Sequence record: MH494197.1
Length of the DNA stretch: 64,000 bases
Direction: 5' to 3' (one strand)
Every line of letters begins with the position of its first letter. Position 1 is the first letter of the stretch. The notes under the pieces were generated by a model. The model was not told the origin of the DNA and searched no databases. It was given only the letters and a program-made list of their open reading frames with translations. The translations under genes were made by a program, and so were the position numbers. Shown in pieces: positions 4,418 through 49,447 of this stretch.

Positions 4418-4774
4418 TTATAGCATCGTATTTTTGTTTGTCTCAGTTTTATTGCTTATTTGCTGCAACAGCAGCTTTTGTTGCCAATCTTCAACTTGGT
4501 CTTCAGAGTTCTGTTCAACTTCACCAGTACTTTCTGAATCATTACCAGTAAATGTTACAACATCCGAATTCGCATCTTGCACAAATGGCAAAGAGTTTAG
4601 AATATCCATCATAACATTATAAGGAACATCAATGTTGGTTCGCTTTTGATTTCAGCGATTAAAGATTGTAGGTTCACTTCTTCGCGACCCGATGATACTA
4701 AAGACAACGCAATAGTAGTAATCATATTGCGTATGTCTTTACCGAGCCTCTTCTGTAAGATCTTGAAATCTCAT
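4418..4774 (-). CDS. Hypothetical protein
   Basis: ATG at 4774 (MRFQDLTEE) joins ORF 4418-4612 across an indel. Confidence 0.55.
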
Positions 4775-4851
4775 TTAGATTCATCCTTAATTATTTTTAA
4801 CGTATCCTAGTACACGTTTAACTTTCTTCTCGTTCTCAGATAGCCAAGTTT

Positions 4852-5420
4852 TCATTTCTTCTTTGTTTTGAAGAATTTAGTACCTACAGTACCGCGAACA
4901 CTTTCCATCTTAATACCAATTTGAGTTGGTTTTACAGATTCTTTCATTTCACGTTCAGTTGGTACTGGCTCAGAAATAATATCTTCTTCGAAATCAGCAT
5001 CAGCACCCATGTCGAACGTTGGGGTGTCAGCAGCAATGTCGATATCAACATCTTCACTACCAATATCAGAAACTGCTGGACCATCAGTGATATCACCAGT
5101 TAGTTTTAAAGTTTCAGTACTGATTTTGTCTTTAACATCCATTAGAGTAGTAACTGCATGTTGAAGTAGGTGGCGAACGCTATCACTAAAGTTCTGTGCA
5201 GCATCAAGACCTTGTTCCGCTTTGATACGGTCAAGTAGTGGGCCTAGAACGTCAACGCCCATGTTGTTGATTACTTCAGACTGACGTTGTAGTTTGTCAA
5301 CGATTTCACCTTTAACAGAGAGAACGATTTCAGCTTTCTCAATATTAGATTCGTTCAATTTGATGAACTTCATTGCTTCAACACGTGAAGCAGATTCCAT
5401 TAGTTTTTGTAGTTAGACAT
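4852..5420 (-). CDS. Hypothetical, probably late/head-associated acidic protein
   Basis: 182-aa ORF with highly-expressed codon pattern; TAAATA near 5451. Confidence 0.65.
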
Positions 5421-5453
5421 TTGAATTTCCTTATAAAATATCACTAAATTTAT

Positions 5454-6130
5454 TTACTTTATATAACCTTCACTCTTTAGAAAGTTCAGTACACGCTCTT
5501 TGAGTTTGTATGCTTCAGCTTTCTTTTCAGCGATGATGATATCTAAATCTTTTGCTTCATCGTACTTCGACTCATTCAGAACACGTTGACGTTTCTGTGC
5601 AGCCTTCAATGCTTCGGTAATTACATTGGTGTATTGTAAACCGGAACTGATGATACCAAGAACTTTTGCATCTGTCAACATTCTTCCTTCGTTGAGAAGG
5701 TTTACTAGTGTTAGTGCAGCTTCATACATCATAATATTATTCATGATAACTTGAGAACTATGATTACATTTAACACTGTATACTTTTGTTGATTTAGTAC
5801 CTTGAATTTTTCTTCTACTAAACTCCAGTTAGTTTTAGGTTTAGCAGGTGCACGTTGTACAACAGGTTGTGCTGGTTGGTGACCAAGCATGTGTTCATTG
5901 TATGGGGCGTGGAATGGAACAACATGTGGATGAGCCTGTTCTGGATCAACACCATAATTCATACCAGCTTCATTTAATGATGTCAATATGTCGGTCATTG
6001 CACCGATATCACCACCTGACTTGTAAGGAACACCAGACGCATTATGGGTTGCACCAGCTTCAATGTCATTCAAACCGCTTAACAAATCAGCCATCTGATT
6101 AACTGATTGTTGATCGTACTCGTAATTCAT
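5454..6130 (-). CDS. Hypothetical protein (two ORF fragments merged)
   Basis: ORFs 5741-6130 and 5454-5744 overlap by a frame change. Confidence 0.6.
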
Positions 6131-6134
6131 TTAT

Positions 6135-7298
6135 TACTCCTAACAGTTGAATACTCTTCAGTACCGTCATCTTTCTCAACAATATTTAGGACTCCACGAG
6201 ATACCATTTTATCCGCTAGTTCCTGATAGTATTCGTTTACTTTTCAACTGGCACGGAACCTCGTGCCTTAATTTTCTGTAATAGTCTGTATTCTTCGTTG
6301 GAAACCATAGTGTTGTGACCATGAACATTAGGTACAGTTCTCATTATCGGCCTCGCATACGGTGACAGAAATCAATGATTTGATCTACCATCTCATCATT
6401 CTCTTGTTGTGCAGAGTTTGCTATTACACTTTCATCACCATAGATATCATCTTCTTTTCGATATCAGCGATTGCATGAATCATTTCACCCATACCGGTGC
6501 GTGTTGTGTTAGTGGAGATGGTGAATTTGGATTACCGTCTGGTTCCATACCGGCTCACCCATCACTTCACTATTAATTTCTTGTGGTGATTTCTCTTCAC
6601 GAATTGTAGTACTTTGATTTTGATTGTCAACTGGAGTTACATCATCCAAAGGAAAACATTCAATTCGTTTGGCTTAGTGCCACTTTTAGTTACTACTAAA
6701 GATTGCTGTGGGTTTTGTCCAGCATCGATACCAACAACAGGTTCAATTGAATCAGTACCGCTTTGATTCCGGGCTAACTTTAATGTTATTAGCATTACGT
6801 TGTAGTTCTGCTTGTTTAAGTTTAGCTTGGGTTTGTGGGTTCACTTGCTGTTGTTGCTGTGACACATTCATTTTAGCAATCTGTGTAGATTTTAATTGAT
6901 TTTCTGGATTTTCCAAATTAGAGGATAAATCTTCAAACACAATAGTTTTTAATTCTTGAATACTCAACTTAGAAACATCAGAGTATGTGAAGTTACTTTT
7001 GTATGCTTCAACTAAGTCTTTCATTGTCATAGAATCAACTGTCTTATGCCAATCAGAACTTTCAACAATATGTTTAGTTACATTGTCAGTACTGAAGTAT
7101 GAGAAACTTTCACTCATTTGTGCTTTGTACTTTTGTAGAATTTGAAAAATTTCACGGTTATCTGAATTATCCATAGCGGCATTTAGTGTAATGAAATCAC
7201 CCGCATCCATATTATCCAGTACAACAGAAACATCAACATTCAAATTATGTGCGTCAGCAAACTTCTGTAGCTCCGCTGCTGTTTGGTTTATATCCATA
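6135..7298 (-). CDS. Hypothetical protein with Q/P-rich linker (merged)
   Basis: MDINQTAAEL... readable to about 6135 with several indels; TAAATA near 7343. Confidence 0.55.
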
Positions 7299-7351
7299 AT
7301 TACTCCATATAAAATAAAAAGACCTCTGTCTTGCTTTATGATATTTATCAC

Positions 7352-7744
7352 AATTAAGAAAAGGTCTGTTTGCTGATGCTAATATTTGTATCATTACCTG
7401 TTGTGATAAATTTTGTAATTCTTTTACCATTTAATTCTGTAGGTAAAACTAATGGTATTCCATTCAAACGCAAATCAACATCCATTGGTATTGCGAATTT
7501 GAAAGTACTAAGAGTACATTTACCCCATGAAACTGGAAGATTATAGAAAGATGCATTGTTATCTTTATATAGATCTATTTCAGTTTTACTACACTTACCA
7601 TCATGGGATAATCATGTACCATAATAGCCTCCAACAATCTCGACAAATTCATAGCACCTGTGAACTTAGAATCGATGATTGTTGGAGTTTACCATCACCT
7701 ATATCTACAACAGTATTAATTGTGTAGAAAGTATATGGTTTCAT
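7352..7744 (-). CDS. Hypothetical protein
   Basis: ATG at 7744 (MKPYTFYTINTVVDIG); broken by indels so absent from the ORF track. Confidence 0.45.
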
Positions 7745-7911
7745 TCATTATCCTTATTTTTAGTCTCAACAACTTTATATCCAAAGAAATTTGTAGGAGG
7801 CATTCTTCGAAGTAATGGGTAATTTAATCCAGTACTGACTGATGCTACTGCACCTGCTGATGTTGCACCAGCAGAAGCATTTTCTTTTAGTTTAGTTTTC
7901 TTCTTCATATC
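7741..7911 (-). CDS. Small hypothetical protein
   Basis: MKKKTKLKENASAGATSAGAVASV... Confidence 0.55.
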   Translation of the reverse strand, partial: DMKKKTKLKENASAGATSAGAVASVSTGLNYPLLRRMPPTNFFGYKVVETKNKDNE

Positions 7912-8173
7912 AATTCCCTTTATTACGTTTTTCATCAAGTGCTATGTTCTCCAAGCCCTTCTGAAACTTTTTATAATCTCGGTTCTTAATACTAAGAAAT
8001 AAACGTTTCTTCAAATCTTCAGCATCAGTTTGGTTAAATTCATCTTCGATACTCTCCAATAAATGAATAACAGAGTTGATTGCATGATCTGCACGATTAC
8101 CAAAACTCTGTAACGTATCTTTCTCTGGTGTATAGTCAACTATACTATCAAGTAGATTCTTTTATTGGATTTA

Positions 8174-9698
8174 CTAGACATTCATTATTTCCTTTGATTT
8201 AACCATTGCTTCATTGCATTTACGATCAGTACCAATGTGAGGCTGTTGAGGCTGGGATTCAGTTTGTGTAGAAGTGATTGGATCACTATCTGTATTTAGT
8301 GTTACGCTTTCAACACTCGGTGTAGTGCTTGGTTTAGGAGCACCAGAAAGCGTATGACGCAGTGTTTGCATTGTACTTGGTGGCATTGCCATGTTACCAC
8401 CGCCGACCTTAGAGATGCCACTGTGACGGAATCCTGACCCATCAGTTTCGAATTGTTGGATTGTGGTTGCGTGGTCTAGTACACGAAGTGAGTCGATATC
8501 ATATGACATACGCAAACGTGAACCAACTGCACTACTGTTACGTGTTTTCTGGAAGTCAAACCAAAGTTCGCCAGTTTCTTTACGTGCTTCAATGTAGATA
8601 ACGTTATCCGCAGTATAGATTTTAGAAATACCACCAGCAATCTGACTTTGACTTTTCTTATCTTCATCCATACCACTACGGTTAAACTGTGACGCAGTGA
8701 ATACGGTCAAATCCATTTTGGTTGCTAGTGCACGCAATTCTTCAGATACAAATTTATCTTTTGTAAATGTATTAGATTTATCATTAGGACCAAGACGATT
8801 TGATGTTAATAGGTCAAGGTAGTCCACACAAACATAATCTAATTTGACTTCCATTTTAATTTGCAATTCACGAAGATAACTTTCAATATCATCAGTGGTT
8901 GTTACGGATTCTGGTAAACGTTTAATACGCAATATACCACTATCCTTGCCTTCCATTTGAACTCGTAGACCAATCTTTTCAGCTTCGTTCTTAACGTTAC
9001 TTAGCTTAGATTCAGTCATCATACCATAGATACGAACGGCTACCAACTCTTCTGCTAGTTCTAGTGAAATGTATGCACCATTCATACCAGCCTTAGCAAA
9101 GTTAACTGCTAAGTTCTGTAGTACTACTGATTTACCACCACCAGACGCTGCTGCAAAGATTTCAAGTTCACGGCGACCAAAACCACCGAATAGTTTATAG
9201 TCAAGGGTTTCCCATCCACTCTTGAATGAACCTTGCATCGTGCTCAATGAACGAATGGTATCTTCTGGATTTTCAAAGATATCAAGACCAACTCATTCTG
9301 TACAGATACTAACATAGCTTCACGAATGAGTTCTTCGATGCCACCATATTTTTCTGATGTACTAATTCCATACCTTTCTCTGCTAGAGCTAGAGCTTTGT
9401 GACGGCAAAACTCACTACAGGTATCCAGTACTGCCTGTTTATGAAGTTCTTGTACTTCATAATGATCATACTGATAACCACCTTTCACTTCGATATCTTT
9501 CAGTGTAGGGGATGAACTATATTTTGCTGCATAATCATGAACGTACTGAATACTTTCATGAAATGTTTTATCAAAATATTCTGGCTTTAGAATATTTTTA
9601 CAACGTACAAATAAATCTGGATTACTGAAAACTTGGGATAGTAAGTATTGTTGTGCATTAATCCCATACTGTTTGACGTCCACTGTGCTTTGAATCAT
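8174..9698 (-). CDS. gp41: Replicative DnaB-like helicase (T4 gp41-like, merged)
   Basis: Walker A AAASGGGKS; YISLELAEE; VCVDYLDLL; TASQFNR; IAGGISKIYTADNVI. Confidence 0.93.
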
Positions 9699-9724
9699 TT
9701 ATGTTCCCTCATTTATATCCTGTG

Positions 9725-10773
9725 TTACATCCACTTATCCGTTTGTGCTTTAATATAGAAAGGCTCGTCAACTATACTATCATGTATCAGTTGTAAACAA
9801 AATAATCTTCCAAATCTAGCACATGCTTCGTCAAAATCTTTAATGTGACGTATAGTACTTCCAACACGTACTGCCCCAAAATCTGGGAAAGAAACACTAA
9901 ATCCATATTCTAGTGCTTGTTCTATTGTTTGTAATCCATCCTTATCACGGTCAGGTACGATAACAATCTTTTTACCTTTTTCTTGTGCAGCTTTAAGTAC
10001 ATCTATTTGTACTGCTGACAATTTAAAGTTATTTGCAGAAACACCACCCATTAGTGCTGCATCCATTGGACCTTCACAAACTAATATAGTTTTAATTCGT
10101 TCATCTTGTAACAGATCATAATTATATAGAATATTAGTACTGACCTGATTAATAAAACGATAGGTACTTCCGGTCTTTAAGTTTGTGTCTAGCAGTATAT
10201 CCGATAATTTTACCGTTCATAACGTATGGTATGATAAATCGGTCATACATTTTATGTTCTTTAGCTGGACTCAATACAATTCTAAATCTAATAGATATGG
10301 ATTTCGCTCATTCACATGATTCAGAACACTAATAAATTCTTGTGGTATTTGCTCTTCTGGTAACGATGCCCATTCCCAGAATGTTTTTGAGTTCGGTGGT
10401 AATTCACGAACAGTTACACGTTGATATAGTTTAGATGCAGTAGTTTCTTGTTCTGCAAAGTCTCCACTATCAACCATTTCTTTAATGTAAAATTTAGCTA
10501 GTTCTATTTCCTTATCCTGTGCACCAAAGAAATGAGCAAAGACTCCATATCTTTGCTCATATATTTTCCAGTTGCCACCCAGTTTTTAGACTACAGTTAA
10601 AACAGTTATAAGAAACAGAACCATCTGCATTAAACATATGATTGCCGCGATTTTTAGTATCGGGGCGTGAATGACCACGGAACACACAAGCAGGACAATT
10701 GTGATGTGTCCACATACCAATTCGGTACTGGGTCATTCATGATTTGTGCCATGATGTTTTGTACAGCGTTCAT
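9725..10773 (-). CDS. gp61: DNA primase (gp61-like; Zn-binding N-terminus plus TOPRIM; merged)
   Basis: Cys/His-rich N-terminus, CFNC, LVCEGPMDAA, IVPDRDKDG. Confidence 0.85.
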
Positions 10774-10802
10774 AATTTAATCCTTGTTATTTCTCACAAA
10801 TG

Positions 10803-10830
10803 ATTATAGCACAAACACTTGTTTTGTCTC
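10803..10830 (-). promoter_or_regulatory. Promoter GAGACA-N16-TATAAT (TGn-extended) upstream of primase
   Basis: Minus strand GAGACA AAACAAGTGTTTGTGC TATAAT. Confidence 0.75.
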
Positions 10831-11799
10831 ACCTGCGAATCAAAATTTTAGGAACTGACAGTAGTGGGTCATAGACTTTTCTTACTGCCGCATAGTCATA
10901 AGGAACTGGAACGATCTTAGGATGAATACAAACAACCAATCGCAACCACATGTAATTACCTTTAAAATTAAATGCTTGAATCCCATCTAACGCTTTAGGG
11001 AATCCATTTTCATCAATATCATTTTCGATATATTCTTTACCATCCAATTTAACAATAAACCATTTATAGTTTTCGTTATCAGTTGGTACGTTATTACACA
11101 AACATCCTTGTAATTGAATTCTACCAATAAATTTATCAAAGTACATTGCAATAGTACTAAGACCATCAACTAATCCGTACTGCATTTGTGCAGGAAGGGA
11201 GATGTTGCCATTATATCAAATTCACCAATAACGCCACGAGCGATTGGTTCATGATAAAGCGTTTGATGGTAGTCCATGCTGGGTTTTATTAACAGATACT
11301 TCAATACTTGGCACAAACACAGGAGCAGCTTGGTCGGAAATGATCAATTCAGCAGAGGCTTCATAATCAAGACCAGTGTATAAGTACTGTGTAGGTTCAA
11401 TCAAGGAACCATCCATTGTTACTTTAGTAATACTCCATCTATATTTTGAACGGGACTAGTATCCTGAATTACACCAGCAGGAACAATACATCCATAATAT
11501 ACTTTTTACTATTACCTAATGTTTGTCTTGCTTGTCCACTTTCTGATAGCCATGATGGTTTTGTTTATCCAGAACTACATCGAATAATTTAGTATTGTTT
11601 CTAGCATCAAAAATCATGAATGTTAGATATTCGTTATCTTTTAGTAATGTATATTTTCCATCAGCATTATGCACAGTGAATGATAAATTGTTATTTGCAC
11701 CTCTGTATATTGTAAGTTTCTCATTGCTGTATGGCATATTAAAATTGCCCAATGATACTTCTTGGTTATAAGGGTACATAAACACGCCGTGATGAGCCA
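10829..11799 (-). CDS. Probable virion structural protein (merged)
   Basis: MAHHGVFMYPYNQ...LTIYRGANNNLSFTVHNADGK readable through to KGNYMWLRLV; late promoter at about 11840. Confidence 0.55.
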
Positions 11800-11811
11800 T
11801 AGTTTTTCCTT

Positions 11812-11850
11812 CCATAAATAATAGGTATAAATTTATACTAATATTTATGG
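11812..11850. promoter_or_regulatory. Back-to-back late promoters (inverted ATAAATA)
   Basis: CCATAAATA...TATTTATGG inverted repeat between divergent genes. Confidence 0.6.
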
Positions 11851-11857
11851 AACTCAT

Positions 11858-12210
11858 ATGAATCAATATAATACTATTCCACCATTTATCACGGTAGTTC
11901 AGTGTGATGGTAAAACTTTCATTGGTATTATCAAGATAAAAAGTAAACAGTATACTACTCTTTACTGCTTTGATGATATGGATGAACCAATGCAAGATGA
12001 ATTGTTGGGTATAGCACATGATTGGTGGTGGCAAAGCAACAGGTCAATTCCAGTCTGTCTATTCTTCCAAGAAGAGATGGAGAAATTTGAACCTTACACA
12101 CAGAGATTCGATACCTGCGGTGAATTTCGTTTGTGGTCCAGTAGTTTCTTTATGATTTGCCACAAAACGCATCAAGCGTCGTAATGTGGCTCTTAAGAAG
12201 AAGTAAGATG
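11858..12210 (+). CDS. Hypothetical protein
   Basis: 108-aa ORF (HDWWWQSNRSIP) downstream of ATAAATA; end approximate. Confidence 0.65.
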
Positions 12211-12825
12211 TTCAACTAAAGCGTTAAGTTGAACTACAATCATTAAGCTGTATGCATACGCATGTGGCTTTTTGAAATATCGTAACTTATTTCCTGCTTG
12301 GTCTGTGCCAATAGTACTGTAATCCCATATAGTGGATTCAACTTCACTCCATGTATTCATACTTTGGCACTGCCTTTTCAGACGAATCATTGCAATAAAC
12401 ATTGCAAGTTCATCAATGGATTTAGGTTTCCACACATTTAATAATGTAACGTGTTTTTAATCTGTGAAAGATGTTCAACTATTTCTGGTTCTAACAGAAG
12501 ATCCCAATTAGGTTCCTGATTCATTAGTTCTTTTAAATGTGCTCTATCACGAACATACTGGTAAGCCGATTGTGACAGGATATCTACCTTTTGATATCCC
12601 AAGCGTTCGGCTTCTTTATATTGTATGCTGGCTAAACCAGTGATAGGGTCAATTGGTATATTATCAAAATGAACACCACTGTTATGGGGATTAAACCATC
12701 CTCCGTAATTTTTCTGTACTTCGCACACAAGGAAGCTGTGCAATCACTGACTTACTATCTTTAAAGTCAATGTCGATATCTGTTCGTGCTTTACGGTACG
12801 AATTAGAATTTGTCGAATCCTGCAT
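12193..12825 (-). CDS. Miniature DNA polymerase III alpha (DnaE)-like catalytic-core protein, about 210 aa (merged)
   Basis: DIDIDF, HNSGV, KVDIL, AMIRP, YFKKPHAYAY correspond in order to DnaE PDIDxDF, HAAG, KxDxLG, ALxRPG, FNKSHAxAY. Confidence 0.8.
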
Positions 12826-13131
12826 TTTTGATTTGCTCCTGCAATTTGTTTACAGTGTTAGATAATTTGGTTACCTGATTTTCTAACATTGTACACTTTG
12901 TTTGGTCTTTGACAACTCTTGACTTAGACCAAAGAATCTTTCCTCATGTCTTTCAACCATACTGATAATTTTTTCTACACGAACAGGATCGTGCACCTGA
13001 AAGGTTTTACCATCAAGTGTAATTTCAGTTATAGAACCCTGTCTAAGCAATGATAAAGATTTAGATTTATCTGCTTTTGGCACAGGTACATACCCTTCTG
13101 GTATTTTATTATATATACTTTTTCCATTCAT
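12803..13131 (-). CDS. Hypothetical protein with C-terminal coiled coil
   Basis: ORF 12883-13131 extends across an indel to ...QIKNAGFDKF. Confidence 0.6.
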
Positions 13132-13835
13132 AATCCAGCCTCACGTAGCATACTTTTTATTTCATCACATTCCTTTTTGTACTTTATAGTTTTAACCTCA
13201 AAGTAACTAGGATCAATGTATTTAAGTATATACTCGATTTCAGAGTTAGAGAGATTCTTGAAAAACTTATTAGTACTTTCTTTTGGTGCTAACCAGATAA
13301 TCCAAGGTGAAATCTTACCACTCTCAATCCATGCAATTGCACGGGCAGAACTAACATTGGAAAAAACTTATTCCACTCCAAGTTCAGATTCTGACCCCAT
13401 TCCACCATCGCAACAACACTACGGAAACCGCAGCATTGGGAGATTCAGAACGAATACAATCTAATATCCATTCATCCTTTGCTTTATAAGTACTCCATTC
13501 CATAATAGGACGGTTTCTTACAATTAGACTTTTTACAAAACCATCAATATCTAAAATATCACGGTTGTTCAAATAATAAATTGCAAAATCATAAAAATCA
13601 CTAAAGTACTTTGATTTTATAAAAGCCATTAATGGTTCAACACCCTTCTTGAAAGGGAAATGGTTTAACTCCATGAATTGCATATAATGCGAAAAGCCTC
13701 CCTCATGGGGCGGCTATCACGATCTTCGTAGCGGTCACGTTTAACACACTTATGTGTGTTAACTGTGTCTTCGCGTTTAAATTCTTTATCACAGAACTTA
13801 CATTTGTATACGGGACTACTTGATTTCTTTGCCAT
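13127..13835 (-). CDS. Protein with N-terminal C2H(C/H) zinc-finger (merged)
   Basis: MAKKSSSPVYKCKFCDKEFKREDTVNTHKC joins ORF 13384-13683; C-terminal GKISPW. Confidence 0.7.
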
Positions 13836-13839
13836 ATTT

Positions 13840-14659
13840 CTTACATTCTTCTTTAAATAATTTCATCATTGATTTCATTTCTTTCTCTTGTAAACCTATG
13901 TCTTCAAGGAAAGACTCGAATGTTTTTTGTTATATTGCAACAAAACAATTTTATATTCATCTTCGTTCATTTGAGTTGCGATTGAATCTGGCTGTGTACT
14001 TTTAATGAGTTCAAATAATTCATTATTAGCACGCTTAAAACTCTTGGAAAAGTTTAACCAGTTTCGTGGCAATTCCTTACCACCCAACATATCATGAACA
14101 GAACATAGTAGTTGATATACAAGTTCAGGGTGTTCTTTCATGTCCCAGAACCCATCATTAACCATATCATTCAACATAATCAACTGATAACGTACAACGT
14201 CACTGTCAACCAATGAGATGATCTGTCCACCAGCAATACTAAATTCAGTCATTGCGGCAATCAACTTGTTAGCATCATCATTGCTTTGTACGGCAAACTT
14301 GATACGCCAATCATAGTCACTGTGACAGTACTTAGTAACTGATGTTACATTAACACCAGTACTATTGAGTTCTTTGACAAGTTCAGTGAGTGCTTCTTTG
14401 CCACCAGCTTTCCACTTACCAAATACGTTTTCCACTTTACTACTAGGAAAGTTACTTGAAGTGAGTCATCAAGTGAACTTACCCAACGAAGTACAGTATA
14501 AGGCGTAAATTCCTTACGCTCATCTTCGGTCATGTCATTATAGTATTTGTAATCTGCACGGTCAATATGTTTTAGAAATTCAGCAATAGAAAATGTATGC
14601 TGGGTTGGTTTATCGTTTTCGTCTACTGACTTAGCTTTAATATTACTGAAATCTAACAC
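13840..14659 (-). CDS. gp62: Clamp-loader small subunit (gp62-like) with long internal extension (merged)
   Basis: IDRADYKYYNDMTEDERKEFTPYTVLRWVSS resembles the gp62-family N-terminal motif; C-terminal HPELVYQLLC. Confidence 0.6.
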
Positions 14660-14669
14660 TATTACACTC

Positions 14670-15158
14670 CTAGATACAAATCTTGAATTTTCTCGTTCTC
14701 ATCTGCAAAGTAAACACAAGGTGGATTGTCACCACTGTGCAGAGGAACACATAGTAAGTTCTTCTTAGGCAACATAGGATCTGCCATTTAGTAGTGAGTG
14801 CGAATACACGCAGCACTTTTACAGGTTCGAACTTAGGATACATTGAGCGGATTGGATTGTAAACAAAAGCTTTAGGTTCTTTCATATTAAGAATGTTTTC
14901 AATGGTACACATCTCAACCATACCTGTCTCTTCATCACCCAACATGATTTGCCAACCCAATGGTACTTGGATAATCTTTTCACCAATCTGCAAATCAGCA
15001 CTGATACTATTAAATGACACAGTGTTTAAAATGTGGCGAAAATAAAAGTCAGAGTCACCGTTTGGACTCAAATCTAAAACACAATACATTTCTGATGGAA
15101 TGTGTTCAGTTACTAAATCCATATCAAATGAATTATTTTCTGGGGTTAATACGTTCAT
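14670..15158 (-). CDS. Hypothetical protein
   Basis: 162-aa ORF with RBS GGAG. Confidence 0.7.
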   Translation of the reverse strand: MNVLTPENNSFDMDLVTEHIPSEMYCVLDLSPNGDSDFYFRHILNTVSFNSISADLQIGEKIIQVPLGWQIMLGDEETGMVEMCTIENILNMKEPKAFVYNPIRSMYPKFEPVKVLRVFALTTKWQILCCLRRTYYVFLCTVVTIHLVFTLQMRTRKFKICI

Positions 15159-15167
15159 CTCATCTCC

Positions 15168-15593
15168 TTAGTACTGGGAATCTTCATCTTCATCGTAGTA
15201 ATCTTCTTCATCTTCATCGGATGTACCATAGAATTCAAGACCATACGTTTCACACATTTCTTGAATCTTATCAACATCAGTATCTAAGTAAGAATCAAAA
15301 TTACCACTAAGACTAACAACATCAATAAACGTTGTAGTATCAGTACTTGCATAGATGATATCATATTTTAATGATTCAACTTTCGAGTCAATTCTGGTTT
15401 GCAATTCATAGATATTAATCCATGAATTAGTGTCAATATTACATCTCCAAACATTAGTATCGTCAGTTTCTAGTTCAGGTATATAGTCAAGTGAAGATAC
15501 CATGTCATCCATAATACCATCATTCAACAATACATCAATTACATCTAACGTTTCTTGGTCACAGATAAAAGCAATACTAGATCTTAATTCCAT
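15168..15593 (-). CDS. Hypothetical acidic protein
   Basis: 141-aa ORF downstream of the promoter at 15629-15655. Confidence 0.7.
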   Translation of the reverse strand: MELRSSIAFICDQETLDVIDVLLNDGIMDDMVSSLDYIPELETDDTNVWRCNIDTNSWINIYELQTRIDSKVESLKYDIIYASTDTTTFIDVVSLSGNFDSYLDTDVDKIQEMCETYGLEFYGTSDEDEEDYYDEDEDSQY

Positions 15594-17959: not shown

Positions 17960-17974
17960 TTTATTCTCGATAGA

Positions 17975-17998
17975 AAAGGACGCGTAATGCGTCCTTAT
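17975..17998 (-). terminator. Intrinsic terminator after uvsX-uvsY
   Basis: AAGGACGC/GCGTCCTT stem followed by a T tract on the minus strand. Confidence 0.7.
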
Positions 17999-18004
17999 GG
18001 ATAG

Positions 18005-18461
18005 TTATTCTAAACGTGCATCTTCAATACCCGCAGCACGTAGTCTCACAATATTGTTTAACTGAAAAGCTTTCATCTCTAAGGATTTAACAATACTGGA
18101 AAACGTATTACGGATATATGATACTTCATTTATTAGTTCGGATAATTCACAAACTTCTTTATCACCTTCAACATACTTTTACAGTCAGAAGATGATAGTG
18201 CTCGACGATATGCTTCAAGGAAATATTTAAACTTTTCAGCTTGTAGTTGACGCATTTCAATTTCTAGCATTTCAAGTACCGCTTTAGTTCTTGAAGCTGA
18301 CTGAGACGAGTCTCATGCCAGCCGAATCTCCTGAGCAATCTTTTCAATGATGCCAATCTTTTTAACTTCACGACGAGCTTCTTCAGTTTCTTTTTCGAAG
18401 TGTTCAATCATGTCGATTATTTTAGATTTATCATCTTTGATGATCCAATGCCAAGGTTTCA
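18005..18461 (-). CDS. uvsY: UvsY-like recombination mediator (merged)
   Basis: Helical ~150 aa protein ending KKYVEGDKEV...SLEMKAFQLNNIVRLRAAGIED; adjacent to RecA. Confidence 0.75.
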
Positions 18462-33094: not shown

Positions 33095-33132
33095 CGTTTG
33101 TATTCCTTTACGTTTATTAAGTTAAAAATAAA

Positions 33133-33153
33133 GCCCCATTCATTGGAGGCTAT
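33133..33153 (-). terminator. Probable terminator
   Basis: Minus strand AGCCTCCA-ATGAA-TGGGGCT-TTTATTTTT. Confidence 0.55.
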
Positions 33154-33174
33154 AAAGTTTAGTTTTAGTACTTA

Positions 33175-33479
33175 TTAGTAATCGTCATCTGCTTGTGGCA
33201 AATTGTTAGTAACACTTAGGATAGTTTCGATGTTATCGAGTTTGTTTTGTTTGTCAAAGTAATCGCCTTTGTAGATACGTTGAGCGGCTTGTTTGATATC
33301 GGATGCATCAATACCTAGTTCATCAGAGATGGAACTAATGAAATCTGCATAGGATGCTTTGGTGTCGTCAATAAAAGTAAGTTGTACTACTGCGTTGTTT
33401 AGTGCATCACCTAGACGTTTACGTTGTTCATCATTTAGGTCACGAATTTCAACTTTAACTTCTTTTTAGCTTTTGCCAT
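33175..33479 (-). CDS. Small acidic protein resembling T4 DsbA dsDNA-binding protein (merged)
   Basis: ~100 aa; ISDELGIDASDIKQAAQRIYKGDY; DsbA-like size and pattern. Confidence 0.55.
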
Positions 33480-33540
33480 TTGTTTGCTTCTCCATGTGTT
33501 TTGAAAAAATGTCATCTCACAACCGCTGTAAGATGACTAC

Positions 33541-33568
33541 ATTGTATCACTACTTACGATTTTGTTCC
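33541..33568 (-). promoter_or_regulatory. Promoter GGAACA-N16-TACAAT upstream of the dsbA-like gene and PolB
   Basis: TGA-TACAAT with 16-nt spacer. Confidence 0.65.
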
Positions 33569-33579
33569 AAAAACTTTTA

Positions 33580-34091
33580 AACAGGTTTAACAGGGAACGA
33601 AAACTTCTTCTTACTAAATTCAGATGTTGTTAGAGATGATAGCTCAAGAACATATGCTTTCAACTTAGAAACAGTTCTATTTCATAATCAGTTGCTACCT
33701 CAAGATCTATCGCCATCTTAATGTTATTCAACTCATTAATTGCTACGGTTCTTAATTCTTGGTGCTCAGATGATAGACGTTTGATCTTTTCATCAGTAGA
33801 TTCAACATAATCAGAAATTTTACTTCCATCATAGATTTTACCAACTACTTCATCTTCATCTCCATCATGCTCCAACTCAGAAACACTGTATCCATACGGT
33901 ACTAACAATGTTACATCATATGATGCTTGTGCAATATATCCATCGTCAGAGTACTGAACTTTTAAAGTATCTTGTCTGAATTCGCTTTGACAATCATACC
34001 AGTCAATACCCTCATCTGACAATAGATAAAGAACATTATCGCCATGTTTTTTCTACTGGGATATATTTTTGAAATTTTTATACGTTTTCAT
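33580..34091 (-). CDS. Tail fibre assembly chaperone (Tfa-like)
   Basis: DWYDCQSEFRQDTLKVQY...YDVTLLVPYGYSVSE, directly after the fibre gene. Confidence 0.75.
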
Positions 34092-44930: not shown

Positions 44931-45787
44931 ATGGCAATGAACCCACTAGCTAAGTATACTAAAATTGAAGAACTTGGTACAAAATTGGTCACAAATGGCG
45001 TGATTCCTTATAAAGAAGGAGTTCTTGGCTCTAAAGGTATCAAATGTGGCATTTGTGCTCGTAGTGCACGCGATGAAATGACACTCAATACACCAGATAT
45101 GCTTCTAAATGGTGATGCAATTGCTCGTGTTATTGAAAACTGCGTACCTAACGTACTTGATGCAGATGAACTTTATGTAAATGACGTAGAGCAACTACTT
45201 ATCGCTATTAAAGTAGCTTCTAAAGAAGAATCATATGATATTAATGTGACATGTCCTGAATGTAACAAAGAAGGCCGTTTTGAGCGTAGCTTATCATATC
45301 TACTAGAAACAGCACAAACTTTCAGTGAAGTTCCTACTGTACAATTGGATAATGGACTAAGTTTAGAGTTTAGACCACTTACTTGGAAGGAATATTCTAA
45401 CTTCGCAGAAAGAATGTTTACAGAACAACAAAAACTAAATTCCTTGAAACTGCCGAAATGGAGCAGGAAGAAAAAGTTAAAGTGTTTGGTGAAGTATTTG
45501 AAAGTATGGCACAACTCAACTTTGATATGATCGCAGGAGTTATTGCTAAAGTAATTACTCCTGAAGGTGATGAAGTAACTGAAAACGAATTCATTGCTGA
45601 ATGGCTAGGTCAGCAGTCCAAAGGAACACTTAAAATAATTCGTGAAAAAATGGATGAAGTACTTGAAATTGGTGTTTCCCATACTATGGAAGTTGAATGC
45701 AGTGACTGTAATCATCAATGGGAAATTAATGGACTGAAATATGACCCAAGTCATTTTTCGCATAATGCTTCTCCACTCATCTCCTGA
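44931..45787 (+). CDS. Baseplate hub subunit (gp26-like, merged)
   Basis: ARDEMTLNTPDMLLNG; DVEQLLIAIKVAS; CPEC and CSDC Zn motifs. Confidence 0.8.
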
Positions 45788-46028
45788 AGAAATACAAGAA
45801 GTACTGAAGGAATTTGAGTTGAATAAGTCAGATATTAAAACTGCATTAATGGAGTGTTCTGTTTATATGGAAAGTGTTGATTACGGAACACTACTTAATA
45901 TGCCACTAATTGATAGAGACTTATTAGTTAAGTCTTTTAATAAGAAAATTAAAAACAAAACGAGAAGCACTAACTCACAAGGAGCCAGCACATTGTTGCT
46001 GGTTTTTGGTTTTAAACTACAGAATTGA
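45770..46028 (+). CDS. Small baseplate hub assembly protein (gp51-like)
   Basis: LLNMPLIDRDLLVK motif directly after the gp26-like gene; true end probably near 45970. Confidence 0.5.
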
Positions 46029-46029
46029 T

Positions 46030-46165
46030 TGAATTGAATTATGAAAGGAATTAATTATTTTATAGTGAACTCATCTAACTCATTTCATTCGTTAGCTGAA
46101 GAATATTCGTTACTACGTAACTCATATTCATTTCTTATAATTAATTATAAAGAACTTTAAAAGAT
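46030..46165. repeat. AT-rich non-coding tract with short direct repeats and a 16-bp palindrome
   Basis: AACTCAT x3, TTCGTTA x2, TTATAATTAATTATAA at about 46135-46150. Confidence 0.6.
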
Positions 46166-46675
46166 TTAATACTTGACGGGATTTGTTGAAGACATTTTCA
46201 TCCCCACAGGGAATGAAGACAATAAAAAGAGACAATTAAGTCTCTTAATTCTTGACGCTGATGGTTTCAGCATTTATTGTATTGCGAATTTCTTAAAATT
46301 CATTAAGAACGAAAGCGGGTTGCTCTGTTTCTCTCTATCGCAGTCATGTGCAACGGTCGTCAGTCTTAATCATCCTGACACTCACCTGAAAGTCTATACA
46401 ATCAAACTTCAGGCTGTTTATTAAATCACTTAATAAACTCCCTTAGCAAATCTGGTAAGGTGCGATCCTTATACATCTATCGAGGAACTCTCTGTATGCT
46501 TATCGGAGTTCTTTATTGAGCCGTGTCGCCGTGAGGGGTTCAAACTATGCCCACATCTAACGGGTTTCTTCTGCTCATCGCACTGTTGAACTGCTCATCT
46601 GCCATCTACATTTTCGATAGGATCAGGTTCTAATTTATATGCATTTCTGCATTCAACAGGATTGTCATCACTACA
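46165..46675 (-). ncRNA. Candidate large structured non-coding RNA
   Basis: Own promoter at 46682-46709, no credible ORF, many stems including minus-strand G-U pairs. Confidence 0.55.
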
Positions 46676-46681
46676 ATTAAC

Positions 46682-46709
46682 ATTATAGCACCAAATTCAA
46701 AAGTGTCTC
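46682..46709 (-). promoter_or_regulatory. Promoter GAGACA-N16-TATAAT with no downstream CDS
   Basis: Minus strand GAGACA CTTTTGAATTTGGTGC TATAAT. Confidence 0.8.
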
Positions 46710-46801
46710 ACTATTATGATAAAAATTTATAAAAAGTACATAATTCTTGAACATTGAAGTAACGCATAAATATTTTGATAAGAATTAGTTTAGTGGGGAT
46801 T

Positions 46802-47263
46802 TATGAAGAAAAGATTAAAAGATAGTAAAGAAGCTGCAAACTATCGAAATGAATTACTAAAGAAGCAAAAGGAATTGATCCTATAATTAAGGAACCAATA
46901 ACTAAGCCAGTACTTGATCACTATCACTTCGAGAATCAACACTGTCGTGAAGTTCTCCAGAACGAAGTGAACGCATGGGAAGGTAAAGTACAGAACAGCT
47001 TTAATCGCTATATGAAGCACTTAACCGATAAACCCTTATACGAGGTACTACGAAATCTTGCGGATTATCTGGAGCGTAATAACAGCATTCCTGAAGATGA
47101 GCAAGTTATACATCACACTGCACTAACAATCGATACGAATAAGTTTAAAAGGCTCCCAGCCGGACAACAGAATGCAATACTGGAAGAGTTAGGTGTTATC
47201 CACGTGCAAACAATGCTGCTCGTGTTAAGCAAGCCAGAAAGCTTATCAAGGAAGGTAAATTAA
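46802..47263 (+). CDS. gp49: Recombination endonuclease VII (gp49-like, merged)
   Basis: DPIIKEPITKPVLDHYH, CREVLQNEVNAWEGK, LRNLADYL. Confidence 0.85.
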
Positions 47264-47276
47264 ATATGGTAGATAT

Positions 47277-47303
47277 AAAAAGGGAGCTAAGGCTCCTTTC
47301 CTT
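47277..47303. terminator. Terminator between convergent gp49 and gp46
   Basis: AAAAGGGAGC-TAAG-GCTCCTTTCCTTT. Confidence 0.75.
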
Positions 47304-47306
47304 TAA

Positions 47307-49447
47307 TTAGAATACATCATCAAGAGTTGTATACTCAACAGTACTGAAACCATCCTCTTTAACTACTTTTAGGATTTTCTCAGTCTTAGAAAGCAATTCT
47401 TCTCTGTGAGAAATGGCATATACATTCTTACCACGCACAGCAGCCATATCTTGGAAGATAGACCACACGCGAAGAACACCACTTGAATCAAGACCTTGGT
47501 CAATCATCTCATCAATGATAAGAATATTGATACTTTGATACAATGACTCATATGTATCACGGAAAGCACAAGATAAAGCAATGTTTACCCTTGTACGCTC
47601 ACCACGACTAAGCTGTTTATAGTCAAAGTACTGACCACTTTTCTCAATTTCTACACTCAAATCATTCAAGAACACAACATTATGTTCAGAACCACACATA
47701 TCAATGTAATATTGAAGACGTGTATTCAGATACGAAATGTTTTGTTCAATAATACGCTTACGGACATAAGAATCCTTGTTTAACAACAATTTAACCAAGA
47801 AATCTTGGTGATTTGCCATCTTATCAAGGTTATTATAGTCACTATAGTCGATTGGTACTAATGAATCGGTCGTAAGTGTATTAATTTGTCCAATAAATGT
47901 GTTAGTAGTTTTCAATTCACGATCTAATTGCTGTGATAATGAAGTTACTGTCATTTCTAACTCTTTTACTTCAGATTTATTCAATGTATCTGGTACTTCT
48001 TGAAGAACATGTGCGTTCAGTTCTTCATATGATGACATAAGTTCATTAGCATAGATGTTAATTTGCTCTTCTTCACTCTTTTAATAAGTTCTTGAAGCTT
48101 ATGCTCATGCATTTGTGCTTCAGTTAGTGTAGAATAGAATGTCACAGGCTTAGGTGGCATATCAAAAATCTCAATACTATCAATTTCCTGAAGTATTGTT
48201 TCAATTTCAGAAGTGGAACTATCAATTTTCGATTGAAGTTCATTAATAGTATTTTGAATTTTATCTTTAATAGACGAAGTATGTTCATTATGTTCTAATT
48301 CGGACATACAAAGTGGACATTTACTACTCTCCACTGTTGCTAATTTGTCCACCTCAGCACGTAACGAACTCTCATGACCATTTAAAGCCACCTTTAATGC
48401 GTTAAGTTTTGTTCTTTGAAACGTTTTTGGTTATTATTCTCTTTTAGAATACCCTCCAACTGTTTCCATATCTCCAACTCATTGTGATTTTCTAATTCAG
48501 TACTGATATCAATAGTTTTTAGCTTATCAATACTTACATTTAATGCTAATTTTGCTGTTGCTAGTTCACGGTCATATGCATCATACTTCAAAGCTAACTC
48601 TTGCACACGTCTTTCTATTTGATCACGAGCAGCATTATGAATAAGAGCTTTCTCTTTCACTTCTGCCAAATCATAGAGATCGTTGAAGTCTAAAGTTTTG
48701 TAGATATTCAATTCTTCAGTCAACTTAGATACTCTATTATTTTTATCAATCTCAAATTGGTTAGCTTGTTCTTGTAATGATTCAATACTTTTTGAATACG
48801 TTCATTACTTGCAGCCACAGTTTCAATTTTGAACTTTTCTTGTTCAGCTAAACGTTTAGAATCTTTATACATATCCTTTAATAGTTCAGCTTTCTCTGTT
48901 AATTGTGTGATGCCCAGAAGTTCCTCAATCATATCACGTTGTTTCTGTGATGATAATGCAAGAAACGGCTCTACGTTAGCATTAAGTACTACAATATGTT
49001 CAAATAGTAGTTGAGAAATCCCAAGAATCTCGTTTAGATCTTCTTGTGTATCTTTCTTCTCCCCTCTTGACTCATCTTCGACCTTATTATCTTTACCTAA
49101 TGTAATAAAGTTGAAATACGTGGACTTCTCCCACGCTCGACGAGATATTGTACACCATCTTTCTCGAACTCAACAGATACTTCACAGTTTTAGCATTAGT
49201 TTTATTAACTAAGTTTGGAATTTTGATATCGTTACCAATACTTTTCCAAACAAACCAAAACTAAACCTTGAATGATGGCACTTTTACCAACACCATTACG
49301 GCGACCGGAACTATCACCACCTTCAATAACTGCATCATTGTTTTGACCAAGAACTAACGATATATCAGCACCAGACAAATCAATTACTTGTGGTGCATTG
49401 CCAAATGAAAAGAAGTTCCTCATTGATATACGTGTAATGTTTAGCAC
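47307..49447 (-). CDS. gp46: Rad50/SbcC-like recombination ATPase (gp46, merged)
   Basis: RNFFSFGN; RNGVGKS; CPLC hook; LSRGE; LIIDEMIDQGLD; ISHR. Confidence 0.95.

Follow-up and report, generated by a model that had tools for sequence, protein, structure and literature searches.

A predicted gene for a large structured non-coding RNA in RaK2-like jumbo phages, with relatives in some prophages

We analysed a stretch of 64,000 nucleotides from sequence record MH494197.1 (hereafter the window), in which a conserved unit on the minus strand, at 46070-46711, lies beside the gene for endonuclease VII (endoVII) and might encode a large structured non-coding RNA (ncRNA). MH494197 is Escherichia phage CMSTMSU (100% match to window positions 45000-48000), a jumbo phage of the 121Q/RaK2-like type. 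The same segment is about 99% identical in a group of coliphages of 350-385 kb, compared with 87% in 121Q/PBECO4 of the genus Asteriusvirus. The CMSTMSU assembly is rich in frameshifts and indels: endoVII is spread over two open reading frames (ORFs) and the gp46-like SbcC over at least four (window 46803-47263 and 47307-48932). The 99%-identical relatives align with 3018-3021 bases against 3001 in CMSTMSU, that is, 17-20 extra bases per 3 kb, and the record seems to contain many single-base indel errors. Because of these indels, a coding sequence missed through faulty assembly had to be excluded first.

A preliminary description of the window had pointed to a stretch at 46165-46709 without coding sequences, in which minus-strand starts give only short peptides. 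This description holds: neither strand of the stretch contains a long ORF, and the six-frame translation is filled with stops. In 121Q (NC_025447), the corresponding interval between gene 595 and endoVII (gene 594) measures 836 bp, has no annotated coding sequence, and contains ORFs of at most 45 amino acids, whichever strand is read. Gaps of about 800 bp are found at the endoVII position also in GAP32, CBB, and BF. The non-coding stretch is real, since the well-assembled 121Q rules out an assembly artefact, and a frameshifted gene was rejected because the clean relatives have no ORF longer than 45 amino acids. The stretch is, however, not the only one of its kind in the window as had been stated. 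With a cut-off of 60 amino acids, there are about 15 ORF-free stretches longer than 250 bp, among them 6131-6707, 17960-18461, and 33095-33659, none with an nhmmer match to the RNA family; these other stretches are probably frameshifted genes. Sequence searches including nhmmer found no second copy of the element within the 64-kb window. Two coding features were noticed around the unit. An unannotated 39-residue ORF beginning MKGINYF (46041-46160, plus strand) overlaps the 3' hairpin module in antisense; its 121Q version has 32 residues, and its conservation is limited to close relatives. In the Salmonella phage Munch (locus L003, 3026-3982), an additional hypothetical gene for 318 amino acids lies on the opposite strand between the RNA element and endoVII.

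Two alignments of family members were used. Alignment A1 comprises 33 distinct full-length members from a motif scan of IMG/VR together with nhmmer, and the main alignment A2 comprises 45 non-redundant members after a 97%-identity filter, aligned with MAFFT without structural guidance; counts out of 45 refer to A2. Read along the minus strand, the unit consists of a promoter, a 5' hairpin, a pseudoknotted core, a hairpin with a U-run, a G/C hairpin, a second CGUCA box, an AT-rich spacer, and a 3' hairpin module. Its features, in window coordinates, are as follows.

46070..46711, minus: whole conserved unit, from nhmmer and the alignments of 45 members
46704..46711, minus: -35-like element GTGAGACA, of the form TGRRAC
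46682..46690, minus: extended -10 element TGCTATAAT; predicted transcription start at about 46675
46640..46651, minus: variable 5' hairpin UGCA-GAAA-UGCA; other members have a hairpin of unrelated sequence at the same place
46620-46628, minus: start of the conserved core, ACCUGAUCC
46602..46621, minus: helix H2, CCUAUC/GAUGG; two-sided changes in 5/5 pairs, 95% of alignment cells paired
46580..46594, minus: H3; 2/3 pairs covary, 100% of cells paired
46517..46577, minus: H4, UGAGC/GCUCA; 4/5 pairs covary, 99.6% of cells paired
46529-46530 with 46563-46564, minus: H5, enclosed by H4, which also encloses a variable insert
46485..46511, minus: H6/7, GAACU/AGUUC; 5/5 pairs covary
46416..46438, minus: H8, GUUU/AAAC; 4/4 pairs covary, insert of up to about 60 nt in some members
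46384..46414, minus: H9, hairpin of 11 bp; 11/11 pairs covary, loop supplies the 5' strand of pseudoknot 1
46276..46402, minus: pseudoknot 1, AUUGUAU (46396-46402) with AUACAAU (46276-46282); two-sided changes in 7/7 pairs, 99.7% paired
46358..46380, minus: H11, UGUC/UGACG; 3/4 pairs covary
46319..46354, minus: likely pseudoknot 2, GUUGC (46350-46354) with GCAAC (46319-46323, loop of H14)
46283..46342, minus: H13, UGCGA/UCGCA, enclosing H14 and H15; 3/5 pairs covary
46311-46315 with 46331-46335, minus: H14; 3/5 pairs covary, central G-U in 34/45
46290-46309, minus: H15; 2/2 pairs covary
46252..46271, minus: first CGUCA box (plus-strand TTGACG, 46252-46257), invariant or nearly so, and a small hairpin whose register varies
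46221..46246, minus: terminator-like hairpin AAGAGAC/GUCUCUU and U-run; a hairpin followed by at least five U in 29/45, stems unrelated between members
46197..46217, minus: G/C hairpin H16, CCC(C)...GGGG(GG)AUGA; 99.6% paired, with one-sided U-G/C-G changes that fit the minus strand
46165..46177, minus: second CGUCA box CAAAUCCCGUCAA, invariant or nearly so in the 45 members
46070..46125, minus: 3' module with hairpins GUUAC-GUA-GUAAC (46109-46121) and CUAAC-GAAUGAAAUGA-GUUAG (46075-46095)

The evidence for a conserved structure, judged from the alignments, is unusually strong. RNAalifold predicted 79 pairs on A1, 54 of them with compensatory changes. When a curated structure of 69 pairs was placed on A2, 97.2% of the cells were paired, as compared with 78.3% after shuffling and 36-45% with slid partners; the covariation score was 0.577 against 0.214 and about 0.07, respectively. 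Changes on both sides occurred in 49 of the 69 pairs, and none of 500 shuffles reached any of the observed measures. By comparative analysis, the core (about 450 nt) has some 15 helices together with one pseudoknot, probably two. In pseudoknot 1, the loop of H9 pairs with a segment 120 nt downstream, and the pairing is Watson-Crick in essentially every member even though the helix exists in at least five different versions (for example, one position is U-A in 23 and C-G in 22 members, and another is A-U in 18, U-A in 15, G-C in 7, and C-G in 3). The second pseudoknot is likely: four of its pairs are invariant, and one switches jointly from G-C to A-U in three rows of A2 (L002, L061, and L016) and in the L004 copy of CBB in A1. 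The conserved unpaired columns are rich in A. Folding of single sequences gained only modestly over shuffles and similarly on both strands (z = -2.8 for minus and -2.7 for plus), and a generic scan for column pairs above 90% canonical was uninformative, being swamped by purine/pyrimidine columns. The evidence for structure is comparative, not thermodynamic.

Eight of the nine stems listed in the preliminary description coincide with helices found here. Compensatory changes back those at 46227-46246, 46290-46309, 46359-46379, 46385-46413, 46416-46437, and 46484-46510 (the last being H6/7). The stem at 46385-46413, which had been said to rely on G-U pairs available only on the minus strand, deserves mention: the G-U character is conserved on that strand (column pair 480-491 is U-G in 40/45 members), and all 11 pairs covary. 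The stem at 46197-46217 is paired, with support from one-sided C-G/U-G changes only, and that at 46257-46271 is plausible, but its register shifts between members. The proposed long-range pairing of 46463-46482 with 46613-46623 fails, as only 79% of the cells are paired and changes are uncompensated; the 5' strand instead forms the local covarying hairpin at 46602-46621. The direct repeat TGCTCATC, present twice in CMSTMSU, is not conserved in other members. The pseudoknots, the multiple copies, the occurrence in prophages, and an extension of about 100 nt past 46165 go beyond what had been described.

The promoter proposed earlier, GAGACA-N16-TGC-TATAAT on the minus strand (46709 to 46682), is present as described, with 10 of 12 consensus matches and an upstream TG. 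In A1, the TATA core of the -10 element does not vary, and the A and T on either side of it reach a conservation of 90% or more. TGnTATAAT or TGnTATACT is found in 38 of the 45 members and a -10-like hexamer upstream of the core in 44, the exception being an Escherichia coli island copy without a recognisable -10. The promoter moves with the core: in members without the 5' hairpin, 15-16 nt separate the -10 from ACCUGAUCC. Other jumbo-phage copies have TGGAAC, TGGGAC, or TGAGAC at the -35 position. The TGRRAC form resembles a promoter class of CBB and GAP32 with the -35 sequence TGAAACG and a classic -10, which is enriched ahead of DNA-synthesis genes (PMC5259590).

Comparison of the two strands favours the minus strand of the window as the one transcribed. 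Compared like for like, the consensus energy is -44.1 kcal/mol for the minus strand and -32.2 for the plus strand, 42 versus 32 pairs covary in Watson-Crick form, and within such pairs the ratio of G-U to A-C is 141:14 versus 54:23. The hairpin with its U-run reads on the minus strand, too. Weak promoter-like sites occur on the plus strand (TTGACG-17-TATTGT and CTGACG-16-TATCAT, 9/12 matches each), and most members do not have the key A at position 2 of their -10. The element is co-oriented with the flanking genes at most loci, whereas at the endoVII locus it runs antisense to the genes on both sides, and in prophages it converges on cI. No conserved downstream gene was found across the inspected loci. 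A separate observation bears on where the dam-locus copies start: in two of them, L071 (121Q) and L044, a strong hairpin with a T-run, GGTGAC...GTCACC TTTTTTT, stands between TATAAT and the core and is probably the terminator of the upstream gene.

Conservation does not end at the U-run. In 29 of the 45 members, the first CGUCA box precedes a hairpin (-3 to -8 kcal/mol) that runs into U5-8, and the remaining 16 have only a U-rich run there. Beyond it follow the G/C hairpin, the second box CAAAUCYCGUCA, the AT-rich spacer, GAAUUGAG, and one to three hairpins, which were found by an anchored hairpin search; RNAalifold gave no consensus for the 3' module because hairpin lengths differ. The stems of these 3' hairpins are unrelated between members, and their caps are conserved as C-GNA-G or as an 11-nt loop, GAAYGAARUGA. 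C-GNA-G hairpins occur on the RNA-sense strand in 34 of 44 members and on the opposite strand in 1 of 44, with a mean of 0.22 across the 44-sequence set after shuffling. Whereas most members have one or two 3' hairpins, RaK2 (L005, 2340-2500) has three in tandem, with loops of the ACGAAGUG type, 3' of its core. Because both conservation and hairpins continue past the U-run, the unit spans about 46070-46711, more than the 46165-46709 of the preliminary description.

The family matched 72 phage records, with four to five BLAST places per record. Of the four to five places per genome, those inspected amount to three copies in 121Q and three locus types overall. A blastn search with the core (window 46165-46645) gave 67-75% identity in Munch, GAP32, CBB, BF, fHe-Yen9-04, XbC2, and several Erwinia phages, and in RaK2/K64-1 a match to part of the core only. 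Matches in INPHARED were confined to RaK2-like jumbo phages. The inspected 121Q copies occupy positions 192762-193318, 247458-248057, and approximately 326620-327157, each on the plus strand of that record; BLAST reports a fourth copy in 121Q. Across genera, the locus types are endoVII, ADP-ribosylglycohydrolase, and dam. In some phages the best match is not syntenic with CMSTMSU: it neighbours ADP-ribosylglycohydrolase in pEa_SNUABM_47, Yen9-04, XbC2, and Kaldavass, and dam in RaK2 and XaC1. BF belongs to the species of pEa_47; its copies are of the endoVII and dam locus types, and the IMG/VR contig corresponding to BF has in addition a copy of the ADP-ribosylglycohydrolase locus type. Another 39 metagenome loci and four bacterial genomes, all nhmmer-positive, came from a long pattern with two gaps, and a loose two-box pattern on IMG/VR returned mostly chance matches, with three new members among 91 loci.

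Among Enterobacterales, single copies are carried by temperate elements and by one genomic island. The gene order on the Serratia fonticola chromosome is large serine recombinase, two ParB/RepB-like genes, RNA, duplicated rof, and tilS; in Silvania hatchlandensis it is cI-like S24 repressor, RNA, and serine recombinase; in Serratia sp. 2723 it is dapE, arsC-like gene, serine recombinase, and RNA; and in an Enterobacteriaceae metagenome-assembled genome it is thiM, RNA, and cI-like gene. On one metagenome contig, a tyrosine integrase gene is followed by the RNA, which converges on cI, and a second contig has a serine integrase. Among 5426 complete E. coli genomes, two carry the family. The one inspected, LR-29-1 (L126), has it on an island of about 10 kb at ffs (4752-15302) with a tyrosine integrase split by IS3. 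The cargo of that island includes DUF4326, DUF488, a dual-OB (DuOB) protein, and a small serine recombinase, and the island could be a satellite or a defence island. In S. fonticola GTA-SR07 (L085, 4775-5490), two 87-residue ORFs for Rof, a Rho modulator, stand in tandem at the element edge by tilS; they may represent a duplication made by integration or a rof copy borne by the element. A search for the wider context of its ParB-like gene returned a single contig of 6.6 kb. With two divergent members as queries, none of the 72,556 plasmids in PLSDB carried the family.

In a tree of the conserved columns, same-locus copies from different genera cluster together, and the prophage and island copies are scattered among different paralogue groups of the jumbo phages. 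The same-locus clustering and the interleaved prophage copies indicate that the paralogues are old and that the element has been exchanged between phage types. We regard these sequences as a new family of predicted genes for large structured RNAs, present in jumbo coliphages and in some prophages. With Rfam 15, cmscan at E<=10 over window 45500-47500 gave nothing above 15 bits inside 46165-46700, and at E<=0.1 over six other member loci its sole match was the signal recognition particle RNA beside the E. coli island. The element is thus no member of an Rfam 15 family, whether ROOL, GOLLD, HEARO/omega RNA, group I and II introns, RNase P, 6S, or any other. That the element is no transfer RNA (tRNA), transfer-messenger RNA, or intron had been surmised before and agrees with our results: ARAGORN found no tRNA or transfer-messenger RNA gene in the whole window, no intron model matched, and in 121Q, GAP32, CBB, and BF the genes on either side are intact and distinct from each other, so that a self-splicing group I or II intron was rejected. 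Our literature search found no description of the element, which may sit unnamed in bulk candidate lists such as PMC10690425.

What might such a unit do? The explanation that we prefer, with moderate confidence, is that the minus strand of window 46070-46711 is a self-contained gene for a large structured ncRNA that acts as RNA. Transcription by host RNA polymerase would take place in the early or middle phase of infection, or else during lysogeny. The RNA would measure about 455 nt if it stopped at the internal hairpin and U-run, and about 600 nt or more with read-through. Once folded, it would itself be the product and would most likely act in trans, serving as scaffold, decoy, or catalyst for a putative conserved partner from the host or the phage, and the several paralogues might serve dosage or different specificities. 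We consider the gene independent because both of its neighbours beside endoVII are read in the opposite direction, the prophage copies converge on cI, and no downstream gene is conserved. Its prophage and island copies, interleaved with the jumbo-phage paralogues, behave as an accessory gene does. As a predicted gene, it has the features of a large structured phage-borne ncRNA, being non-coding, with its own transcription signals, a covarying multi-helix fold, and carriage by phages and prophages. The conserved promoter and the covariation across 45 members also support the earlier suggestion of a structured ncRNA in the size class of ROOL and GOLLD.

Several observations weigh against this explanation. 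Both ends of the putative transcript are predictions. About 180 nt are conserved after the terminator-like hairpin, which suits an RNA gene running simply from promoter to terminator poorly unless the hairpin is leaky, and the terminator-like stems are weak and missing in 16 members. C-GNA-G triloops are familiar above all from phage origins, where they cap hairpins of single-stranded DNA that are very stable, and the work of Hirao on d(GCGAAGC) reportedly found such stability for a DNA hairpin of this type. As for the strand, an early wobble test on the union of the ribosum-RNAalifold models of both strands was ambiguous, with G-U about as frequent as A-C, because each strand's model picks its own G-U pairs; the strand preference emerged only with the curated structure and the like-for-like comparison.

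Some of these features would be accounted for if the unit were an RNA-primed replication origin following the logic of ColE1 RNA II or of T4 oriF/oriG, which we regard as the main competing explanation, possible but rather unlikely; the preliminary description had named an origin-priming RNA as an alternative. The structured transcript would stay hybridised near the G-run, A-run, and CGUCA box and prime the leading strand, while the displaced RNA-sense strand would fold the C-GNA-G hairpins as signals for priming or helicase loading; the copies would be multiple origins per 350-kb genome. The layout is suggestive: a promoter, about 450 nt of structured RNA, a U-run, a run of six G, an A-run, CUCGUCAG, an AT-rich spacer, and oriented hairpins. 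We take pMB1/ColE1 to have, likewise, CTCGTCAGGGGGG and a run of five A at the switch from RNA to DNA. The conservation past the terminator-like hairpin fits this model, as does the strong strand bias of the GNA-capped hairpins towards the strand that would be displaced, although they could also be RNA hairpins. Moreover, T4-like genomes with a UvsW-like helicase, UvsX/Y, and RNase H hold four to five copies each, the S. fonticola copy abuts two ParB/RepB-like genes, and the -35 element resembles the CBB promoter class linked to DNA-synthesis genes (PMC5259590). However, the absence of the family from the PLSDB plasmids implies that the unit is not a self-sufficient replicon, and the temperate copies lie between integrase and cI or at a prophage edge, with no replication gene in the few kb inspected. 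The hairpin and U-run present in 29 members would free the RNA before the presumed switch point, the near-invariant core with its probable double pseudoknot is far more elaborate than known primer RNAs, and a conserved antisense promoter for a regulator RNA was not found. A more specific proposal is a portable origin dependent on RNA structure, in which a folded pre-primer RNA and single-strand hairpin signals would serve T4-like jumbo phages of 350 kb in several copies and would have been taken over by temperate elements and islands; this, too, seems rather unlikely to us.

The order of promoter, structured RNA, and terminator-like hairpin would also suit control in cis, in which the nascent RNA senses or modifies some factor and thereby sets the passage of RNA polymerase through the hairpin and U-run, as put or a riboswitch would. 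The targets would be downstream genes or, by antisense read-through, genes that converge on the element, cI among them. At the dam and g515 loci the element is co-directional with the genes downstream, read-through in the prophages would indeed be antisense to cI, and the dam-locus copies are devoid of the terminator-like hairpin. We nevertheless judge this mechanism improbable, because no downstream gene is conserved, the nearest co-directional gene at the endoVII locus is about 1.4 kb away past two opposed genes, known antiterminator RNAs are only about 70 nt long, and conserved modules continue beyond the terminator. Very improbable, in our estimate, is a mobile element of the non-autonomous kind, or a site for recombination or packaging, with the hairpins as single-stranded DNA signals of the HUH/Y1-transposase, attC, or rolling-circle type that would explain how the unit spread. 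The sharp boundaries, the unrelated mobile elements that host the unit, the interleaving of prophage and phage copies in the tree, the strand-specific hairpins with conserved caps, and the frequent integrase neighbour speak for it; yet same-locus copies are orthologous across genera and thus old and stable, neither terminal inverted repeats nor target duplications were seen, there is no transposase in cis, and the covarying 450-nt core and conserved promoter would be left unexplained. Finally, a coding origin of the stretch, be it a decayed or frameshifted gene or a group of micro-ORFs, is hardly credible despite the many frameshifts in CMSTMSU and the two to four hypothetical proteins that some pipelines annotate here, as clean relatives have no ORF above 45 amino acids, indels are not multiples of three, and conservation tracks helices rather than codons.

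Large, intricately folded RNAs of bacteria and phages are rare, and almost each of them has led to new biology. The phages hosting the present element grow on laboratory E. coli (Sharanji was isolated on K-12 MG1655), so it can be deleted, tagged, probed, and imaged, which has so far been hard for ROOL and GOLLD. The retention of old paralogues, the sharing with prophage lysogeny modules, and the near-invariant loops suggest a function of importance to mobile elements generally. If the unit were instead an origin, it would give the first handle on how replication starts in RaK2-like jumbo phages and the first sequence-conserved family of jumbo-phage origins, a phage counterpart of ColE1 RNA II. 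In either case, the "empty" gaps of about 600-800 bp in more than 70 deposited genomes are now flagged, gaps that some pipelines fill with spurious hypothetical proteins.

Among known systems, HK022 put and lambda nut share with the element a promoter-proximal structured RNA, phage early transcription, and terminators that follow. As far as is known, these antiterminator RNAs always stand ahead of the operon that they control, whereas the element often faces convergent genes. T4 oriF/oriG are comparable in having a promoter-driven transcript at several sites of a T4-like genome with genes for UvsW and RNase H; however, T4 origins are not known to have an RNA structure in common, and their transcripts are short and unstructured, unlike the roughly 640 nt conserved here across genera. 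The resemblance to RNA II of ColE1/pMB1 extends to a sigma-70-type promoter, a folded RNA of about 0.5 kb (here a covarying fold of about 450 nt), a G-run, an A-run, hairpins on the strand that would be displaced, and a range mainly within Enterobacterales. The element differs from it by being absent from plasmids (0/72,556 in PLSDB), by its internal hairpin and U-run, and by its far more conserved, pseudoknotted core; nor was a conserved antisense unit of the RNA I type found among the members, in which only the weak plus-strand promoter-like sites occur.

PA5oct, a distant relative of the RaK2-like clade, produces ORF-less transcripts of a comparable kind: its long ncRNAs ncRNA001-004, defined by RNA sequencing, measure 236-619 nt, and two are highly expressed throughout infection (PMC7318152). 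A search with nhmmer --max found no similarity (E > 1) to ncRNA002 and ncRNA004. ROOL and GOLLD, large "ornate" RNAs associated with phages and prophages, are known from cryo-electron microscopy (PMC12286853). They differ from the element in their hosts, which are Firmicutes or rumen taxa as opposed to Enterobacterales and their jumbo phages; the element, in turn, has several paralogues per genome, is not tied to tRNA clusters (no tRNA in the window), and has no sequence or structure match to them (cmscan, E<=10). What they have in common is a size class of 0.5-0.8 kb, many covarying helices, tertiary pairing of the pseudoknot type, carriage by phages and prophages, and the lack of coding capacity. 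By this analogy, and without implying homology, the element appears most like ROOL and GOLLD in kind.

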